From positions 21,824,001 through 21,888,000 of the forward strand of contig OZ116701.1 of the NCBI GenBank assembly GCA_964199315.1: a stretch of 64,000 bases of DNA, given 5' to 3'. Made by a program: the position numbers and the translations under genes. The DNA comes from Orbicella franksi. Lineage: Eukaryota. Numbering within the stretch: position 1 is the stretch's first letter; each line of letters begins with the position of its first letter. Positions 37,693 through 59,255 of this stretch are shown here, in pieces. The notes below the pieces were generated by a model that was given only the letters and a program-made list of their open reading frames with translations, was not told the origin of the DNA and searched no databases.

Positions 37693-38559
37693 CTAAAAGA
37701 AATGAAACAAAGAAACAATTGAGCTGCTTCCACAGTGACCCTTAATGTGTGATTAAAGTAAAGCTGTCTGTCTAAAGAAACATTATTTTATGAGTACAGA
37801 GAAGTTCATATTTGTTCCATTTTGTTCCAGGCAGATCATAAATACCTATCATCATGTACCTGCTCTCTGGTCTTTGATACATTCTCTTTCGTTTCACATG
37901 TCATCACCCCCACTACATCAACACTCATCCAAACCATGTGTATCGAAAATTTATTAGCCCTTAGTTTTGGAGCTTCAGACAGGGAATTAGGTCTGATTTT
38001 GTTTATACACCCTCTGCACCACATGTTTTCCACAAAAATCCAGGAACATTGGTTTGAATTTTTTCCTGGGAAAACATTGCTCCATTTTCTAGCATCTTAT
38101 ATATCTCAATATGTGACCGTCGGTAAGTTCCAAGAGATCATACCCACGGCTTGTAAACGAACTGCCACATCTTTAATTTTGCTACATCTGATACACAAGT
38201 CTTCCATACCTTCCTTGCCTTAAGACTTCCGGCGTGTAGTTCAGAATTATCACAGTCTTTGACGAAAGAACCGAGGTGAAAATAGTACCTTTACAAACTG
38301 CCAAGGTTCGACCTTGTTCGGAACAGCAAAACTCATGTGCTTTTTTGTCACGTGACTCTACATCAAGGGAAAACTGGTGCCTAGTGCGCAATACCACTGT
38401 TCAACTCAATGCAGTAGCATTTATATGGCTCCTCTAAAATGTTCGTCATTTTAAACAAAACAGTCCTTCATCCTATTCTATGTCTCTGTATCTAGATCTT
38501 ACAGTGTCTCTGCTAAATGTTTATACTTCAATTCACTCTAATCTCGTATGGCTCCTCGT

Positions 38560-41500
38560 CAGGGATTCCCAGTCTCTCTTGTGATGACTCTAGCAGAAGA
38601 ACCAGCTTGTTAATAGGTCAATCCAGTGTGGATCCCTTTGAAGTTCGGACAGTTACTGATCTGACCTGACCTTGATCGTCTTGATGAGTAGTGAGCACTT
38701 TAACCAAAGACCACTGGTTTCTGCATGTGTTGTTGTCCTTCAGCAATACATCACCTTCGGTAAAATTTCTATGTTGTCTTGTCCATTTGTTTCTTACTTG
38801 TAGGCTCTGTAAGTACTCTTTGCTCCATCGGACCCAAAACTCATTACCAATGTGTTGCACACACCTCCAATGTCGCTAACAATAGACATCTTCTGTTTGA
38901 AACTTTCCAGGAGGTGGAAGAATGAGCTTCGATTTGCCAGTTAGAAGGGTGTTTGGGGTAAGCGGTTGTGGTGAAAGTGGATCACTCAAGGTGTCAACCG
39001 TAAGGGGGCGACTGTTCACAACCGCTTCGGCCTCGCACATTAAGGTTCTCAACGCTTCATTGTCCAGACTGTGGCTGTGTTCTCTCATGAGTGCCACCAT
39101 AATGTTTCGCACAGACAGAATTTGCCTTTCCCACACTCCTCCAAAGTTGCTTGCTGTGGCGGGGTTCCTAACCCAGTCAATGTCATCCTTTAGAAGCTCT
39201 CCCTTAATCTGATCATCATCCATTTCTTGGAGCGCCCTCTCCAACTCGTTGTCTGCTCCCACAAAATTAGTTCCTTGGTCACTGCAGAGCTCTCTTGTGG
39301 GCCCTCTTCAGCTAATGAAACGCTGTAAAGCTTGTAGAAATGAATCTGTTTCCATTGAGTGTGCTACTTCAATGTGGATAGAACGACTAGCCATACATGT
39401 GAATAAGGCTCCATACCTTTTGACTTCTTTCCTGCCTTCCTTAACATGCCATGGTCAAAAATAGTCTACTGCACAGTATGTAAATGGGGGCGCAGGCTCA
39501 AGACGTGACTTTGGAAGATTGGCCATTTTCTGTTCTCCAGTACTTCCACGAAGATAGCGACAACTGACACATTTTGAGATGAAATGCTGGACAGCTGCAT
39601 TCCCATTAATGATCCAATAACCGTTTGTGCATAGCTCATTCAACGTGACACCTCGTACACTATGTTGGGTCTTCTCATGAACATGACGGATTATCAGTGT
39701 TGTGACATGGCCAGCTTTCCGCAAGATGATAGGGGTTTTGATCCGTCCTCCAACTCTTAGAACCCCATTGCTATCCAAAAATGGATCCAGTGTATGCAGA
39801 CTGCTGGTTCTCTTCATTGCAACATTTTTATCTTTATCCTCCTGTCGACATTCACGCTTTCCATCAGCTTGAAGGCCCTTTAAGACTGTAATTTCTTTTT
39901 CAAAGGCGTCAGCTTGCACTAACTTGATAACTTTTATTTCGGCCTGTTCCAAGTCGTTCACCATAACAGGTACAACAACAGAACAACTTGTATAATCGCT
40001 ATTTCGATCACTGTTCTGAGAGGTTTTTTTCGCTGAAGATCCACTAATTGCTTTGCTTATGCTCACTTTCAGCCGCTGTTTGTACATCATGCATAAAGCG
40101 ATCGCTGTCTTCAACCTTTGCCAATTGGAAAATCTTTCTAACCTGCTCAGCATGTCTTTCCTCTCTTCTACGATGGTAGAATTGGCAGTGGTCTTTCTCA
40201 CTTCTGGACTGCTGGGGTCAATTTCATCTTCATATGAACTTTGCTTTGGCCAGTGATTTTCACTTTGCCACAAGAAACCTGGACCATTGATCCATTGTGA
40301 TTTCTGCAGAAAATCACTTGCATTCAGACCTCGTGAACCTTCATCTGCTGGGTTTGATGCCGACTCTACGTATCGCAATTGTGCTGGTGAAGTGTAATCT
40401 CGTATCAACTGCACTCTATTTGCTACATAGACATGGAATCTTCGAGACTCATTGTTGATGAACCCAAGAACCACCTTACTGCCCGTCCAATGAAACTCTT
40501 CTATTCTCTCATAATCCAACTCGTTCTTGAGCACATCAGCCACTCTTACTGAGACAGCAGCAGCAGCTGCTAGTTCTAGCCAGGGAATGCTGACTGTTTT
40601 CCTTGGTGCAACGCGTGCCTTGCCCATGACAAAAGAGCAATGTACCTGATTGTTGTCATCAACTAAGCGTAGATACGAGCATTGCCCATATCCAGTTTCT
40701 GAGGTATCTGACATATGCAGTTGCGCTGAGACAATCTGAGCAAAGTCAGGGGGCTTGAAGCTCCTTGGAATGTTGAGTTACTCTAGGGGGGGCATTTGAC
40801 TTCTCCACTTGTCCCAACGGGCAAGAACATCACCTTGGACTGGGTCATCCCAACTGTTGCTGTGACAAATTTCTTGCAATATCTGCTTTCCAACGAGGAT
40901 GACAGGTGCTATGAATCCCAAAGGATCATAGACTGAGCTGACTGTTGACAGCATTCCCCTACGAGTACAATGCTGATCTTTCAACTCTATCCTGAACTTA
41001 AACGCATCTGATTCAATGCACCATTGCACGCCCAAAGCTCTCTCTATGGGAAGCCTGTCTTGACCTAAGTCTAGGCCCTTAATTTCCTTTGCACTATCTT
41101 CGGGCGATACTGACATAATCACCCTTCAACTGTTGCTGACAAACTTCGTGAGGTTGAATCCTCCCTTTGCGCACATCTTCTTAACGTTATGAACAAGTTC
41201 TATGGCATCTTCCTTGGTCGGCACTGATTTCAATATGTCATTGACGTAAAAGTTCTTAAGCATTTCTGCAGCCTTCACACCAAACTCCGCTTCACTATCA
41301 CCTGCAGTACACTTGAGCGCAAAGTTTGAGCAGCCCAGTGAAGATCCACCACCGAACAGATGCACTGTCATACAGTATTCTTCAGGCTCCACTGCCAAGT
41401 CTCCGTTGGGCCACCACAGGAAACGAAGAAAATCCTGATCTTCTTCCTTCACCTTAACCCGGTAGAACATCTTTTCAACATCCGCCATAAAGGCAACTTT

Positions 41501-44500
41501 CTCTTGTCTGAATCTTGTTAACATGCCAGTTAGTTTGCTGGTCAAGTCAGAACCCTGTAAAAGGTGGTCATTGAGTGATTCTCCCTGATAGCGTGCTGAA
41601 CAGTCAAACACCAGACAGATGCTACTTGGTTTTTTCGGGTGATAAATGCCATGGTGAGGTAGATACCACACCTTACCCTTCTGGGTTACTAACTTCCCAG
41701 AGTCTACCTTACGAGCATGTCCCTTGTCTATTGTGTCAGCCATAAAGTTAACATAATCAGCATGGTACTTGTCATTTGCTTGCAGCCTCTTCTTCAAACC
41801 AGCAAGTCGCTGAACTGCTTGAGGGCAGTTATCTGGGAGCTGGATATTCTCTTCTCTGAATGGGAGTGGCATCTCATATTGTAAGTCCTCACGGTGATGA
41901 ATTCCCTCCTCAGCCTTCCTTAGAAATTCACGATCTTCTTGAGACATAGCTGTTCTGTTTTCCCTTTCAGAAAAGTCCAGTTCAAACATTTGTACAACTC
42001 GAGGCGTTATCTGTTCCTTGACGCTTCTCTCAGCTACTATGTAGCCACTAACATCCTAAGCAGCACTGGTCTTGTGGATCTGGATTCTGTTACAATGCAC
42101 CACACCGTTGCCTTTGCATTCAATTGGCCCATTAATGTGCCATCCCAAAAGTGACCGTACAGCATATGGATCGTTCTGTTCTCCATGAATGATATCCCTT
42201 GGCCATACTGCACTAGGGCAGCTAAGTCCAATCAGGAGCCCTATCTCTACATCTTCCATATACAGTGGTATGTGCTCGACGACTTTTTGCAAATGTGGCC
42301 ATCCACTAGCTGTCTCTGGTCTAGGGATTTCATCTCGGTCTGCTGGAATGTGTTGCTTAACATAGGCTCTGGGAGTGTTTAGATGTACATCATTTTCACT
42401 AAAGTGAGCTGCCACCAATCCGTCAACTACCTTGGTGTCAATTTCTTGTATGCCATGCATGGTGGTTAGCAATAATTTAGTCTCAGTTCCCTTAACGCCA
42501 AGCTTTTCCAACGACTCTTCTTTAATGAAAGTTCCACCACTTGCATTGTCAAGAATAGCACAGACTCTTATTTTGCGTTTGGGACTGTCCTTATGGTACA
42601 GCCAGATAGGGACTATGCCCATGCTCACAGGAATATCACCAGCCTCTGTCACATTACAAATGGTGTTACAAGCATTAGTGATTTGGCCACCATCTTTCTT
42701 TCCATCAATCTCCTGTACTTTACCTTCACCACTCTGAGCTTCAATTGTCACTGCTTCTTGTTTCCAGTCGGGATCATGAAGTGATGTCGGATGTTTCTTA
42801 CTACAAGTCTGACAGGACTTTCTACTCTTGCAGAGCTTGGCAATGTGCTCAGAGCTGTAACATCCAAAACATAAACCTTTCTCTTTAACAAAGTTCCTTC
42901 GCTCTGTTAAAGGTTTCTTCAGAAACTCAGCACATTCGTCTAGATCATGTGCCTTGGAACATAAGGTGCAGCTGCGGGAATGAGGGTCTCGCGTGCCACC
43001 ATCTGGTTTCGAGATATTTGTCCCAAACCATGAACCTTTACCTCTCTTGAATCTTTGATCTCCTGGTTTACGGAATTTCTCATCTGTCTCCCTTGATTTG
43101 CTGACCACCTCTTCTGAATAAATGGGATCTGTAGCCAAATCAGCTTGCTCTGACACAAACTGACAAAAGTCACCGAAATTAGCCATCCGTTCCTTGGTAC
43201 TTCTAATTTTCCTAACTCTTTCAGTCCATTTACTGCGCAGGTGTCGTGGTAACCTCTCCCACAATTGACGAAGAACATTTGCAGTGTTCAAGTCATTCAT
43301 GTAAGCCATGCCTGTCATAGCATTCCTTGCTTGCTCAAGAACAATGGAAAATTCCTGCAACCCTGATCCATCATTTGGCTTCACAGAAGGCCAGTTAGGT
43401 ATTTTGAAAATGTATGCCCTTGCAATTTTGTACAGGTCTCCAAAATGCTTCTTCAGTAGTCGTCTAGCTTCTCGGTATGAATCTTCACTTTTCATTTGCA
43501 AACAACCCTTCATCAGTTCCTTTGCTTTGCAACTGGTATACTGATCTAAATAATACAATACCGCTCAATAGAATTTTCAACCTTAGATTCTATGAGTCTC
43601 AAAGGCTGTTATGAATGCTGGGTATGCCATGACATCTCTGGAGAATGTAGGTGGTTTATGTGAGGGCAATTGACTTCTAGCTTGTTGTGCAACAATCGTC
43701 TCTGACAGTTCTGTTTGTTTCTTTTGGACCTTTAGAAACTCTTGACATTACTGTCATTAACAATAGAACTTGAATCTCTTCTTGATAAGTGTTCACTTTC
43801 TTGCTTGTCATGTGACTGCTCAGCAACAATGGGTATTTCAGGTTGTTCTACTTCTGTAAATAGGTTTCCAGGAACGAAGGGTTGTGCGGATGGATTCATA
43901 GCACAAGTTGTAAATACAGCACTAGTTGTGATAGGAGTGGTGGAGGGAGTAACCATGGAAATTGTATTAACTGAATTCACAACAGCTGGCACTTGCAGTT
44001 TTCCAGCAGTAACAGTACTTATTCATACAACTGGTAAAGTAGCTTGATTACAAGAAATGGCTTGAGACGAAATGGGAGTTGAGGTGTATTTCACTTTCAT
44101 GGTTTCCAAATAATCATTCATGCCATCAATGTTTTGTTCCATTTCAAATTGCTTGTAAACATTTTCTTCTAAGAATGCTGCCTTAATCTCCAAGGCGGCA
44201 GCCTTAGCCTTAGCTTCCATTAACTTTGACTTTGAAGAAGATGAGGAAGTGAGAGAACGCTTAGAACGACCAGACAATCGTAATTTTATTGAGCCAATTT
44301 CATCATCATGTTGCTTCTTTGCCTGGTTTAGGAATGCAATCACACTGCTTGAAGATAAACACGTCTTTATCGTGTGTATCAAACCATTCTTGGGCCACTT
44401 TGATCTCATGATCATCAGTCAAAGCATTAGTATATCGCTCATGCACTTCTTGTAGCCTTGAAAACACTTGATCTAACACCTGCGATTCTATGCTCACTTG

Positions 44501-44788: not shown

Positions 44789-45116
44789 AATATGTTCCTT
44801 TTCTTGATCCTCTTCGAATGTAACACTCTTTCACCGTAAATTGGTGTCCATAACCAATGTTTACCATTTGTAAGGTCGAACTGTGACCGTCGGTAAGTAC
44901 CAAGAGATCATACTCACGGCTTGTAAACGAACTGCCATATCTTTAATTTCGCTACATCTGATACACAAGTCTTCCATACCTTCCTTGCCTTAAGACTTCC
45001 GGTGCGTAGTTCAGAATAATCACAATCTTTGACGAAAGAACTGAGGCGAAAATAGTACATTTACAAACTGCCGAGGTTCGGCCTTGTTCGGAACAGCAAA
45101 ACTCATGTGCTTTTTT

Positions 45117-45126
45117 GTCACGTGAC
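45117..45126. promoter_or_regulatory. Palindromic E-box GTCACGTGAC in the BEL LTR (also 38347-38356)
   Basis: Perfect 10-bp palindrome conserved in both LTRs, next to an A-rich run on the element's sense strand. Confidence 0.5.
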
Positions 45127-45359
45127 TCTACATTGAGGGAAAACTGGCGCCTAGTGCGCAATACCGCTGTTCAACTCAATGCGGTAGCATTTACACAATA
45201 CTATGCTATGCACAATACTTAACAGGAAATTACACAGTTACCAAATTGGTCAACGAATTATCAGGACAATCTGTCCTATTAAAAAAGCCACCAGGATCTT
45301 AGCTGGTACCTGGAGGTATTTTCACCTATAAGTTGGGTGCTGGAAATCCCACTACAATA

Positions 45360-54656: not shown

Positions 54657-57600
54657 TGTAGTGTTTCTGTTGTGACGTGTCAGTCACATGATCACTGGTC
54701 TATTATGGGATGCGATTTACCGAAGCATGTGGTCGGAGAAATGGGAGCAGAAATAAATCTTGTTGTTGTTATTGTATAAGCTCTTTTGGTCTACTTGCGC
54801 CCGAACCACCACATTTGGCGACGAGGAAAACCGGATAAAAAGTGGATAACGAGTTTAAACAGTGGAAAACTCGCACAGATGGCCGTATCCTTGAGCGGAC
54901 TGCCAGGTTTACAAACATTCAACGCTGTGGGTGAGCCAGCTACACTCGCACAACGATGGCTAACTTGGAAAGACGAATTCGAATTGTATGTGACTGCCTC
55001 GGGAATCAGCGACCCAACACAGAAGGCGCTTCTACTTCACCTCGCCGGGCCCCAAGTCAGAGACGTTTTTAATAACTCAATTCCTGCCGACAAACGAGGC
55101 GAAGCGAAGGATTACGAGAAAGCTATGGACAGCCTATCCGAACATTTCAAACCGAGAAAAAACGCGCCGATGGCAAGACAGGCGTTTCTCGCAGCTCAAC
55201 CAACCGCTGAAGAAACCATTAACAATTTCATCACACGCCTGCAGAAATTAGCCGAACATTGTGAATACGACGGTGAAAGGGACAACCAGGTGAGAGATCG
55301 TGCGATTTCTTTCATTCAAGACAAAAACCTCAAGGCCAAGTTGTATTGCGAAGAAACATTTACATTGAGCAAACTATTGGAAATCGTTAGTCAATACCAT
55401 GACAAAGAAGCCCTCGTTCTTATCCGCGATGGCCGAGTGAATAACATATCTCCAGACGCCAAACAAGGGGGAAAATGTTGGCGGTGCGATAAAGCGGGAC
55501 ACTTCGCGAAGGAATGTCTTCGTTCGCGTGACCACAAATGCGGGAAATGTGGCAACATGGGTCATTTCGAAGTGTGCTGTCACTCCAAACAGAGTAAAGG
55601 GCGAGATTCTAGTTGCAGTTCGAGTCGTGGTTGTGGAAACGAATACCGTGGAAACTCTGGAAGAAAGCAAAGCCGTGGATGAAGAGGAGGAAGTTCACAG
55701 GGCCAACGTGATGTACGCCAAGTAACCGAAGACGTGACTACTGGAAACTCCGCAAGGAAGGATGATTTCTACGTGTTCTACACTGGGGAGACAGATGACG
55801 GGAACACTCTGAAGCTGGAGATTGCAGATAAGACTATGAACGTTATTATAGACTCTGGTGCTAGTTGTAATTTAATGTCCGAAGAAGTATTTAACCTTGT
55901 AACGGGGGTAATGTTAAATTGTTGGAGTGCAACAAAAGAGTTTTTGCTTATGCATCTGAAGAGCCACTCCAAATCAAAGGAAAATGTAATCTTGATGTAC
56001 GTGTGCCACAAACCCAAAAGTCCCTGAATGTTGAGTTTTATGTTATGCTTGGCAAAGCTGCGACGCTATTAGGCCGCGATGCATCTGAGTTGCTTGGTGT
56101 TTTAAGGGTTGGTATCCCTGTTAACAGCTGTGATGTTGAATCTGATGGTGCTAGTGACAATCCAAAACAAGCAGATAGAAAGGCCTCCCTAAGGGCAAAG
56201 TTTCCCAAAGTTTTCCAGGGCCTGGGGAAGCTCAAAGGGTACCAGCTCAAGTTACACATTGATGAAAAAGTACAACCAATTGCTCAACCCCCACGCAGAA
56301 TTCCTTTTAGTAGACGAGAAAAAGTCACGGAGAAATTGGAAGAGTTACTGAAGCTTGATGTTATCGAAAAAGTAGAGGGACCTACCAGCTGGGTCAACCC
56401 CTTAGTAGTGGTCGAGAAGCCTAACGGTGACATTAGAATCTGTCTAGACATGAGACAAGCGAACCAAGCCATTGTGCGGGAGAAACACCCAGTCCCCACC
56501 GTAGAGGAAACACTCCAAGAAGTCTCGAATGCCAAAGTTTTCTCTAAATTAGATTTAAATATGGCTTTTCACCAAATTGAGTTACACCCAGACTCAAGGG
56601 ACATTACAACCTTTGCTGCACCTAATGGCCTTTACAGATACAAGCGCCTGCTTTTTGGTGTAAACATGGCCACGGAAAAATTCCAGCAAATTGTTTGGCA
56701 GATCATCCAAGACTGCCCAGGGGCATACAACCTGCACGATGACCTACGAGTTGTTGGCACAAATGATGAAGAGCATGACGAAAACTTAGAGAGGGTCATG
56801 CGCAAGCTTGAAGAAAGTGGGCTTACGCTTAACTATGATAAATGTGAAATTGGTGTTGGCAGCATGATCTACATGGGTGATGTACTCTCTGGGGAAGGGC
56901 TGAAAGTGTCTAGTCAACGTGTGAAAGCTATTGTTGAGGCACCAGCACCCCAAAACCCATCAGAAGTAAGAAGTTTTCTTGGCTCCGTGCAGTTCTGTTC
57001 AAAGTTCATTCCCAACTTTGCATCAATATCGAGTCCATTGTGGGACCTCACCGCAAAAGACATCAAGTGGAAGTGGGGAGTAAAGGAAGCAAAGTCATTC
57101 CAAGAGATAAAAGACCGGCTGACTCGTGCACCAGTGATGGCATATTTCAGACAGGGCGCAGAAACTCGTCTGACAACCGATGCATCACCAGTGGGAGTTG
57201 GGGCGATTCTGGAACAGAAGCAAAAAGATGGAAGCTACAGGCCAATATATTATGCCAGCAGAAAGCTGAGTAAGATTGAAATGAGGTACTCCCAATTTGA
57301 AAGAGAAGCTCTGGCTGTAAGGTGGGCTTGTGAAAAGTTCTACTTGTACCTCTATGGCATTAGCTTTGAAATCTGCACTGATCACAAGCCTCTTCTCATC
57401 GTACTCGGAGCAAAGTCAAAGCCCCCATCAGCACGAATAGAAAGATGGTTTCTCTACTTACAGCAGTTCCAATACAAGTTGACACATATACGGGGCAAGG
57501 ACAATGCTGCAGACGTCCTGAGCCGCCTACCGGTGGGTACTACCCATGATCACGAAACTCAAGCTGCAGAAGAGTTTGCGTACAGCGTAGTAAGTGAGGC

Positions 57601-59255
57601 TGTACCAGCTGCGTTGGTGCCAAAGGAAGTTGAAATCGCTTCTGAAAAAGACCCAACGCTAAAGATGTTACGGCAGGCTGTAATGACAGATGATTGGAGC
57701 CAGTTACAAGGCACAATTTACAAAGCAGTTAAAGATGAACTGTGGGTGGTAGGACAGGTGGTGATGAGAGGAAGCCGTATCCTCATTCCACAGAGCCTTC
57801 AAAAGCGCACCATAATGTTGGCTCACGAAGGACACCAAGGTATGGTCCGAACTAAAGCCAGGTTGCGAGAGAAAGTATGGTGGCCACGAATGGACAAGCA
57901 AGTAGAGCAAGCAATACGAACATGTCACCCCTGCCAGCTTGTCGGACCCCGATCCAAACCAGAGCCGGTGAGATCAACCAGACTACCAGACTCCCCGTGG
58001 CAAGAAATCTCAGTTGACCTTCTCGAGATTACAAGTGGAGATCACCTCCTGGTAGTTGTAGACTACTATTCTCGCTGGATCGAAGCTGTCGTTCTCAAGA
58101 AAACAGATGCACAAAATGTAATCAAGTCCATGGAGGCTATTTTTAGAACACATGGTCTACCAGAGACTGTCCGTAGTGATAACGGACCTCCATTTGCATC
58201 CAAGGAATTCGAGGGATTCCTAGAGTATCTAGCAATTGAACACAAAAAGGGCGTGCCCTATTGGCCCCAAAGCAATGGAGAGGTGGAGCATTGCAATGGG
58301 ACCTTACTGAAAATCGTGAGAATCACGCGCCTAGAGGGTAAAGATTGGTGAAAAGCACTCGCAGACTTTCTATTCCAGTACAGAGTTACCCCTCATACTG
58401 TTACTGGGATATCACCAGCAGAACTACTGATGGGGAGGGAGCTACGTGACAAACTTCCAAAAGTCCAAATCCCCAAGGATCGAGCCACTGAAGCACAGTG
58501 GCAGCTGCTCTTAAAAGAGAGGGATGCTCATGCTAAACTTAGACAGAAGGAGTATGCAGACAGAACACGCGCTGCCAAATTCAGCGACATTGAAGAGGGT
58601 GATCAAGTCCTACTGAAACAGGTTCGAGAGAACAAACTCTCACCCAATTATGAACCTGAGCCATACAAGGTCGTTCACAAAGATGGAAATGCCGTCATAC
58701 TGGAAGATACCAATGGGAACAATAAAATGCGAAACATAGCCCACATGAAGAAATTTGTTGCACCTGAAACCACTGAAAAGGAAGACCAGGTACAGCCAGC
58801 ACAACTACCCCAAGAGCCAGACCAGGTGGAACAAACGCATCCAATGACAATTGCAAGCCAGCCAGCAGAGGTGCAAGAGACTCCACCCAACCCTTTGCCG
58901 GACGATTCAGTTGTTTTGCGACCTGCGCGCTCTAGACAACCACCCGCCTATTTAAAAGACTACGTATGCACTTAGTTTTAGAATGTGCAGGAGACATAAA
59001 GAGAGAGACTGTTTGTTTTAAGGACTATTAATTAGATTTGTAATACTGTTCATTTAGTTCTTCTCTAGTGCTGACATTTGTAATAACTTAGGGGGAGATG
59101 TAGTGTTTCTGTTGTGACGTGTCAGTCACATGATCACTGGTCTATTATGGGATGCGATTAACCGAAGCATGTGGTCGGAGAAATGGGAGCAGAAATAAAT
59201 CTTGTTGTTGTTATTGTATAAGCTCTTTTGGTCTACTTGCGCCCGAACCACCACA
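54657..59255 (+). mobile_element. Young full-length Ty3/Gypsy LTR retrotransposon (Mag-like)
   Basis: 157-bp LTRs (54657-54813, 59099-59255) with 1 mismatch; 5-bp TSD GTCAG; PBS TGGCGACGAGGA 54816-54827; PPT AGGGGGAGA 59090-59098. Confidence 0.97.
54879..58975 (+). pseudogene. Gag-pol with two in-frame TGAs (55680, 58349) and one frameshift (~55905)
   Basis: Two CCHC knuckles, IDSGA, LHDD, TDAS, HEGHQG..CHPC, VDLL, SDNG, QSNGEVE; frames checked from the ORF coordinates. Confidence 0.93.

Follow-up and report, generated by a model that had tools for sequence, protein, structure and literature searches.

Tf1 needs no tRNA to begin reverse transcription: the 5' end of its mRNA folds back, is cut by RNase H and serves as its own primer, as shown in the studies that PMC4600332 cites on this point (Levin 1995, 1996; Lin and Levin 1997). 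For the wider Tf1/sushi group, and for Tj1 of S. japonicus, self-priming has been predicted from sequence complementarity (PMC4600332), and it has likewise been predicted in plants for Tcn1 (Ty3/gypsy) and for the TAR/Houba/Osr-1 lineage of Ty1/copia, the criterion being complementarity to the LTR over at least 10 bp, beginning 0-5 bp after the 5' LTR (PMC6317226). The third superfamily, BEL/Pao, is described differently, since the ICTV profile gives it an 18-nt site for tRNA-Arg or tRNA-Gly and tRNA-primed replication (PMC8742986). Here we compare with these systems a BEL/Pao element from Orbicella franksi, and we argue from the comparison of related families that the lineage to which it belongs probably starts reverse transcription in the manner of Tf1, from its own RNA and without a host tRNA.

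The window (the whole stretch of DNA that was analysed, 64,000 nt in length) carries the element on its minus strand, and the features of the element, as read from the window sequence, are collected in Table 1. The LTRs begin with TGT and end with ACA, and their boundaries were set by the target site duplication (TSD) together with 10 further LTR copies, nearly all of them solo. The structure is that of BEL/Pao, with TG...CA LTR ends, a 5-bp TSD and a polypurine tract (PPT) before the 3' LTR, and so are the domains that Pfam recognises in the window ORFs, namely PF05380 in pol and DUF1759 in gag; two relatives, L074 (87% nt identity) and L075 (80%), have DUF1759, RVT_1, Pao, rve and DUF5641 all present. 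In most related families, (A/G)GGGGAGCCA stands directly before the 3' LTR. A word search with a 419-aa piece of pol placed the closest named protein relatives in Actinia tenebrosa and Acropora muricata. According to the ORF list, the interior is split into at least six pieces, with the reading frame broken at several places, and many of the differences between the 5' and 3' LTRs are CpG transitions. The window element is an old, inactive BEL/Pao (Belpaoviridae) copy, and because its ORFs are broken, its LTRs 6% diverged and the motif in its 5' LTR mutated, this particular copy is unable to self-prime now.

Table 1. Features of the BEL/Pao element, and LTRs of a neighbouring Ty3/gypsy element, in window coordinates
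Feature	Position	Strand	Description
TSD TATTG, upstream copy	45196..45200	-	read directly; equals 38107-38111
5' LTR	44882..45195	-	314 nt, TGTAAATG...GGTCACA; direct repeat with 38112-38425, 94% identity
Candidate promoter element GTCACGTGAC (CACGTG box)	45117..45126	-	about 32-41 nt upstream of the motif; putative promoter role
Self-primer motif, 5' LTR: AAGGCCGAAC	45076..45085	-	9/10; private T>C
Candidate poly(A) signal ATTAAA	44942..44947	-	within the LTR and about 130 nt farther downstream than the self-primer motif; putative function
PBS GTTCGACCTT, proposed self-primer docking site	44872..44881	-	adjoins the terminal ACA of the LTR
gag-like ORF fragment (DUF1759)	42056..43558	-	Pfam PF03564, E = 8e-7
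pol fragments, Pao retrotransposon domain	39455..41122 (ORFs 40778-41122, 39455-40714)	-	Pfam PF05380, E = 4e-14, 2e-14
Polypurine tract region AGAGGAGCCA	38426..38435	-	abuts the 3' LTR on its upstream side
3' LTR	38112..38425	-	314 nt; start TATAAATG (one G>A change), end GGTCACA
Self-primer motif, 3' LTR: AAGGTCGAAC	38306..38315	-	10/10; family consensus
TSD TATTG, downstream copy	38107..38111	-	equals 45196-45200
Ty3/gypsy LTRs	54657-54813, 59099-59255	+	157-158 nt, 99% identical, TSD GTCAG

Read on the sense strand from 44881 downwards, the bases after the 5' LTR are GTTCGACCTTACAAATGG, and TGG is absent within 0-5 nt. The primer-binding site (PBS) at this place, GTTCGACCTT, is the exact complement of AAGGTCGAAC, which stands at LTR position 111-120. 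When the two are annealed, the final C of the motif faces the first base after the LTR, the position where a minus-strand primer must end, and the same register is found in all six families that we compare below. Against a threshold of at least 10 nt, 0-5 nt after the 5' LTR, the pairing with the family consensus is thus 10/10 at offset 0, and the motif of the window element is continuous. An earlier note on this stretch had pointed to the TGG-less bases at 44881-44872, to their complement in both LTRs (complete in the 3' LTR, 9/10 in the 5' LTR), to the placement of the motif's 3' C at the LTR edge, and to an A-rich run 26-31 nt upstream of the motif with an E-box above it; reading the sequence again bore out every base and coordinate, and the A-run and GTCACGTGAC (45126-45117) are where the note had put them. 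Its description of a local hairpin, CAAGGT-CGA-ACCTTG, holds in part: a stem exists, but its full length is partly an artefact of a CpG>TpG change in the 3' LTR, and the family consensus at this place, ...AACCTCGG, leaves a stem of 4 bp (AGGT/ACCT). Partial self-complementarity is seen in the primer 10-mers as AGGT-CGA-ACCT, which includes 2 nt after the motif, and as GTC-TTT-GAC, which lies within the motif.

A search of the whole genome (497 Mb, 805 contigs) returned 10 more LTR copies (L002-L008, L010-L012), nearly all of them solo and with 5-bp TSDs. AAGGTCGAAC is present in all of these except L012 (83% identity), in which the motif region is deleted, and since the other genomic copies read AAGGTCGAAC, the T>C change in the 5' LTR of the window element is private and arose after insertion. 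The window element is the sole full-length copy of its own family in the genome, no other LTR match running past the LTR end. A divergent LTR, L013 (73% identity), retains GTTCCGAACAAGGTCGAAC along with the CACGTG box; at that locus a second LTR copy or a PBS was looked for and none was found. When RNA-derived contigs with the motif were sought in a metagenome collection, the 18 contigs recovered were all genomic, either solo LTRs or, in one case, a full copy. Several of these JGI metagenome contigs (L091-L093, L096, L098) hold solo LTRs flanked as in L002 and L005, for example by ATATGAATCTGTAAAAG and TAACCCAATAGC, and because these flanks are shared, the host DNA in the JGI samples comes from the same species or a very close one.

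Relatives were collected from other assemblies by contig look-ups that followed a word search with the 419-aa piece of pol, and one further family came from the element's own genome. Six families (A-F) have an intact 5' LTR junction and were counted, and they amount to about 3-4 independent lineages rather than six because families A-C share ancestry, as do families E and F. Family A, that of the window element, is represented by L076 (94-95% nt identity), L074 (87%) and the metagenome contig L097, with both pairing partners unchanged. In family B (L075) about 80% of the interior is identical, the LTRs have diverged strongly from those of family A, and its own two LTRs are 99.7% alike; the motif, AAGGTTGTAT, lies at the homologous place in the LTR and pairs with the PBS GTACAACCTT. 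Here PBS positions 3 and 5 have changed together with LTR motif positions 8 and 6, and a third change turns a G:C pair into G:U, so that the 3'-terminal pair of the primer would be U:G, which counts against self-priming. Family C (L077, L078 and L080) pairs TAGGTCAAAC with GTTTGACCTA and adds two further compensatory double changes.

The remaining families have 10-mers quite unlike that of family A, and in each the motif and the PBS are complementary at 10/10 positions. Family D comes from the genome of the window itself (L039; pol about 43% identical in amino acids) and pairs AGTCTTTGAC with GTCAAAGACT. Its PBS was read in L039 where an LTR runs into the leader of the next element, and a query with this junction of LTR end, site and leader found 9 genomic copies at 96-100% identity, with the expected distance upstream of pol. 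The locus (G000 C9:373750-381097) is a tandem array of LTR-interior-LTR-interior, with two LTR-PBS-leader junctions 7,046 nt apart. Family E is from the sea anemone Actinia tenebrosa (L082, GCA_009602425.1; TSD CCTGT) and pairs GAGTTTTTAC with GTAAAAACTC. Family F (L084) pairs GAGTTAAAAC with GTTTTAACTC; its motif is homologous in place to that of family E, and between the two families TTT and AAA are swapped, with compensation on both sides.

Over the six families, 59 of the 60 pairs are Watson-Crick and the one remaining is G:U; the duplex spans 10 nt in every family, its first pair involving the base that directly follows the terminal ACA, and 8 of its 10 positions covary across families. 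In a permutation test, the observed score is reached by only 1 of the 720 assignments of sites to motifs, the true one, the mean score being 37. Control 10-mers with a perfect complement in their own LTR numbered 0 of about 8,900 when all families were taken together and 0 of 1,056 for the interior of the window element; together with shuffled LTRs, which gave at most about 1e-3, the latter count agrees with the chance of roughly 3e-4 estimated in the earlier note. That note had also proposed covariation across related BEL families as the test of its main idea, and the outcome is positive in 6 of the 6 families with an intact junction; its suggestion that this BEL lineage self-primes in the Tf1 manner thereby gains support, and in our judgement is likely to be right. 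From these alignments, we take it as established that the pairing of motif and PBS is exact, in register with the LTR edge and kept by compensatory change in six families from corals and a sea anemone.

Four other relatives gave no usable junction, and none of them contradicts the pattern: L079 has a truncated 5' LTR, L083 a deletion, and L081 and L085 no 5' end. In L079 (7270-7377 and 12063-12400), the 5' LTR breaks off exactly 2 nt past the motif (TAGGTCGAACCT) and runs straight into the gag leader, with the loss of R-U5, the PBS and about 660 nt; this is most simply read as a plain deletion, but the position of the break point right after the motif is curious. L083 (4397-4730, compared with L084:5509-5900) is a family F copy with LTRs 99.3% identical, in which 52 nt, counted from a point 3 nt after the 5' LTR, have been deleted and the PBS with them, and the end of the 5' LTR has changed from ACA to ATA. 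Outside Cnidaria, a relative from Priapulus caudatus (L086, TSD GTCAG) matches at 9/9 positions in the same register (GTGAAAACT with AGTTTTCAC), with AATAAA between the motif and the LTR end; given a control rate of 0.5% for such a match, it is no more than suggestive.

Some of the contigs that hold these relatives contain further insertions. In L081, a Ty3/gypsy element (2142-6976; 1,436-aa pol, 146-nt LTRs 98.6% identical) is nested in the BEL/Pao pol gene. In L075 (1-3853 and 16308-17417) and L084 (1-3481), the BEL copies adjoin genes matching the Pox_A32 packaging ATPase, DNA_pol_B_2 and a YadA-stalk-like protein, which suggests that these host contigs may contain Maverick/Polinton-like or giant-virus-like insertions.

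If the lineage self-primes, the replication cycle would begin as follows. The 5' end of the genomic RNA would coincide with the 10-mer AAGGUCGAAC in the LTR or precede it by a few bases, and the 10-mer would then mark the start of R. The 10-mer would fold back over R-U5 and pair with the 10 nt that directly follow the LTR, the element's RNase H would cut after the 10-mer, and the 3' end set free in this way, facing the first base after U5 in the duplex, would prime minus-strand strong-stop DNA, as in Tf1. In minimum free energy folds of an RNA assumed to start at the motif and taken to just beyond the PBS, the 10-bp helix closes R-U5 in every family, with a mean pair probability of 0.74-0.99. 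Families A-C also have a conserved CTCGGC after the motif that is able to pair with the U5 end in cofolds; this pairing could form a second stem like the U5-IR of Tf1, or could act as a conformational switch.

The strongest alternative accepts that the helix between LTR and PBS is real and selected, and holds that it serves RNA packaging, dimerisation, translation control or the holding of an initiation complex, with some other molecule as the primer. Covariation, after all, proves pairing and not priming, and among retroviruses the U5-leader and U5-IR stems adjoin the PBS, as established in work cited by PMC4600332. However, the helix occupies exactly the 10 nt with which the interior begins after the LTR, the place where the 3' end of a primer must sit, and leaves no room for another one; moreover, a TGG within 0-5 nt of the LTR is absent in 6 of 6 families, and the leader downstream of the PBS shows no conservation across families A/B, C, D, E and F. 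Hence, we consider it unlikely that the helix exists for another purpose. A displaced tRNA site was considered separately: TGGTAAACATTGG, located 15 nt downstream, was rejected as too far from the LTR edge and as absent in families C-F.

According to a second alternative, the element does prime itself, with the 3' copy of the motif as the source of the primer. The transcript would then start downstream of the 10-mer, the motif would belong to U3, and its copy at the 3' end of the RNA would pair with the 5' PBS either in cis, through cyclisation, or in trans. The motif is indeed present in both LTRs, and the start site is not placeable from sequence data. What can be read around the motif, however, fits a start at the motif itself. 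A pyrimidine-purine step, the usual start dinucleotide of Pol II, is found at its first base in 6 of 7 families, family C being the exception, and the motif start has an Inr-like ACAGT context in family D and in the Priapulus element. Families A, B and C, as well as L079 and L013, have a CAC(G/A)TG box at a similar distance, about 35-40 nt upstream in A-C, and families B, C, D and E and the Priapulus element have ATTAAA or AATAAA in the LTR's 3' part. From the pyrimidine-purine step, the CACGTG box and the downstream poly(A) signal, we infer an RNA start at or near the motif. In addition, the local fold of R-U5 and PBS is already predicted to be very stable, and we know of no precedent for priming from a 3' copy of such a motif, all of which makes this route quite improbable.

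A third alternative is that a host RNA primes, be it half of a tRNA, an internal piece of a tRNA of the kind known from copia, or some other small RNA, and that the LTR motif merely resembles this primer. GGTCGA-like strings do occur in the variable and T-arm regions of tRNAs, which would speak for such a primer, and half-tRNA priming exists in Ty1/copia lineages (PMC6317226). As an internal contrast that favours self-priming of the BEL lineage, the Ty3/gypsy element of the same window (54657-59255, plus strand) has an ordinary tRNA-type PBS, TT+TGGCGACGAGG, so that tRNA priming as such is available in this host. (This compact neighbour, whose pol ORF of 810 aa carries RVT_1, RT_RNaseH and rve and whose PPT is AGGGGGAGA, looks young.) Against a host primer stands the behaviour of the site itself, for families in the same or sister genomes have PBSs that differ from one another at 2-7 of 10 positions, and each version matches its own LTR; conserved host RNAs cannot track such differences between sister families, and a host RNA primer is therefore disfavoured. 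The searches for a host primer point the same way. In the 497-Mb genome, the 15-mer complement of the PBS has no exact match except in the element itself, and the reverse-complement 15-mer with at most 2 mismatches gives 721 matches, compared with about 2,190 for a reversed control, and thus no enrichment. No tRNA gene was found at the 29 best near-match loci of the 15-mer complement or in the window, the 655 kb of sequence examined contained a single tRNA, which does not match the PBS, and the Rfam search gave no match. A host primer is, on this evidence, highly improbable. Chance complementarity in a decayed element, of the kind that events of 3e-4 will produce when very many windows are scanned, is refuted by the pairing with different letters in 6 of 6 families with an intact junction, by the control 10-mers and by the permutation test.

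Self-priming is to be preferred over a host primer because a self-primer predicts a compensated helix at the position of the primer and a host primer does not. The best explanation of these sequences would thus be a known mechanism at work in BEL/Pao, a superfamily for which, in agreement with the earlier note, a search of the full-text literature returned no report of self-priming; most subscription journals lie outside the coverage of that search, and an older report is possible. It is a broader and more doubtful proposition, which we hold only tentatively, that self-priming is the normal replication mode of a large and still active BEL/Pao clade across Cnidaria, and possibly beyond.

If self-priming in BEL/Pao is confirmed, all three superfamilies of LTR retrotransposons would hold self-primed lineages. 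Such a distribution bears on the origin of priming in LTR retroelements, and it would revive the idea, raised in PMC3601003, that hairpin or self-priming, and not tRNA priming, is their ancestral state. A self-primed clade would also change the ICTV description of BEL/Pao as tRNA-primed, and would explain why LTR annotation pipelines that rely on a tRNA PBS fail on, or mis-score, many cnidarian BEL elements; the corresponding annotation rule would be that the 10 nt after the terminal ACA pair with a 10-mer inside the LTR. Elements independent of host tRNA would, in addition, escape silencing by 3'-tRNA fragments aimed at the PBS. For the window, the gain is a fully annotated dead element.

Compared with the canonical members of BEL/Pao (Belpaoviridae, Semotivirus: Tas, Pao, BEL, Roo and others), the element has the same gene content and order, a 5-bp TSD, TG...CA LTRs and a PPT, but the tRNA site is absent in the putatively self-priming lineage. 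Its membership in Belpaoviridae stands despite the missing site, because tRNA priming is a described habit of the family and not its phylogenetic definition. With the half-tRNA priming of copia it shares a PBS that lacks the TGG matching a tRNA 3' end; however, the primer of copia is a fragment of a conserved host tRNA, whereas the BEL site changes together with its own LTR. The plant Tcn1 and TAR lineages show the same complementarity, by the same criterion, as the BEL lineage, and they illustrate that self-priming occurs in more than one superfamily; they belong to the other two superfamilies, and the support for the BEL lineage adds compensatory changes between families.

The closest likeness is to Tf1 and Tf2 of S. 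pombe, to Tj1 and to the Tf1/sushi Ty3/gypsy elements, in all of which the PBS directly after the 5' LTR complements the element's own LTR and a tRNA PBS is lacking. In the Tf1/sushi group, as here, the duplex closes the R-U5 region; the PBS complement of Tf1 comprises 11 nt at the 5' end of its mRNA, and the duplex of the BEL lineage comprises 10 nt. The start, the RNase H cleavage and the priming of Tf1 were shown by experiment, whereas those of the BEL lineage are predicted from sequence; the published evidence for the sushi group and Tj1 is sequence complementarity, and hence of the same kind as that presented here. In descent, however, the two are separate, since the BEL lineage belongs to another superfamily, with DUF1759, Pao and DUF5641 and without a chromodomain, and its pol is of the Pao type and not of the type with RT_RNaseH and a chromodomain integrase that defines the Tf1/sushi clade. 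The best reading, and one we hold with good though not full confidence, is that the element in the window belongs to a lineage that works like Tf1 and yet stands outside the Tf1/sushi clade.
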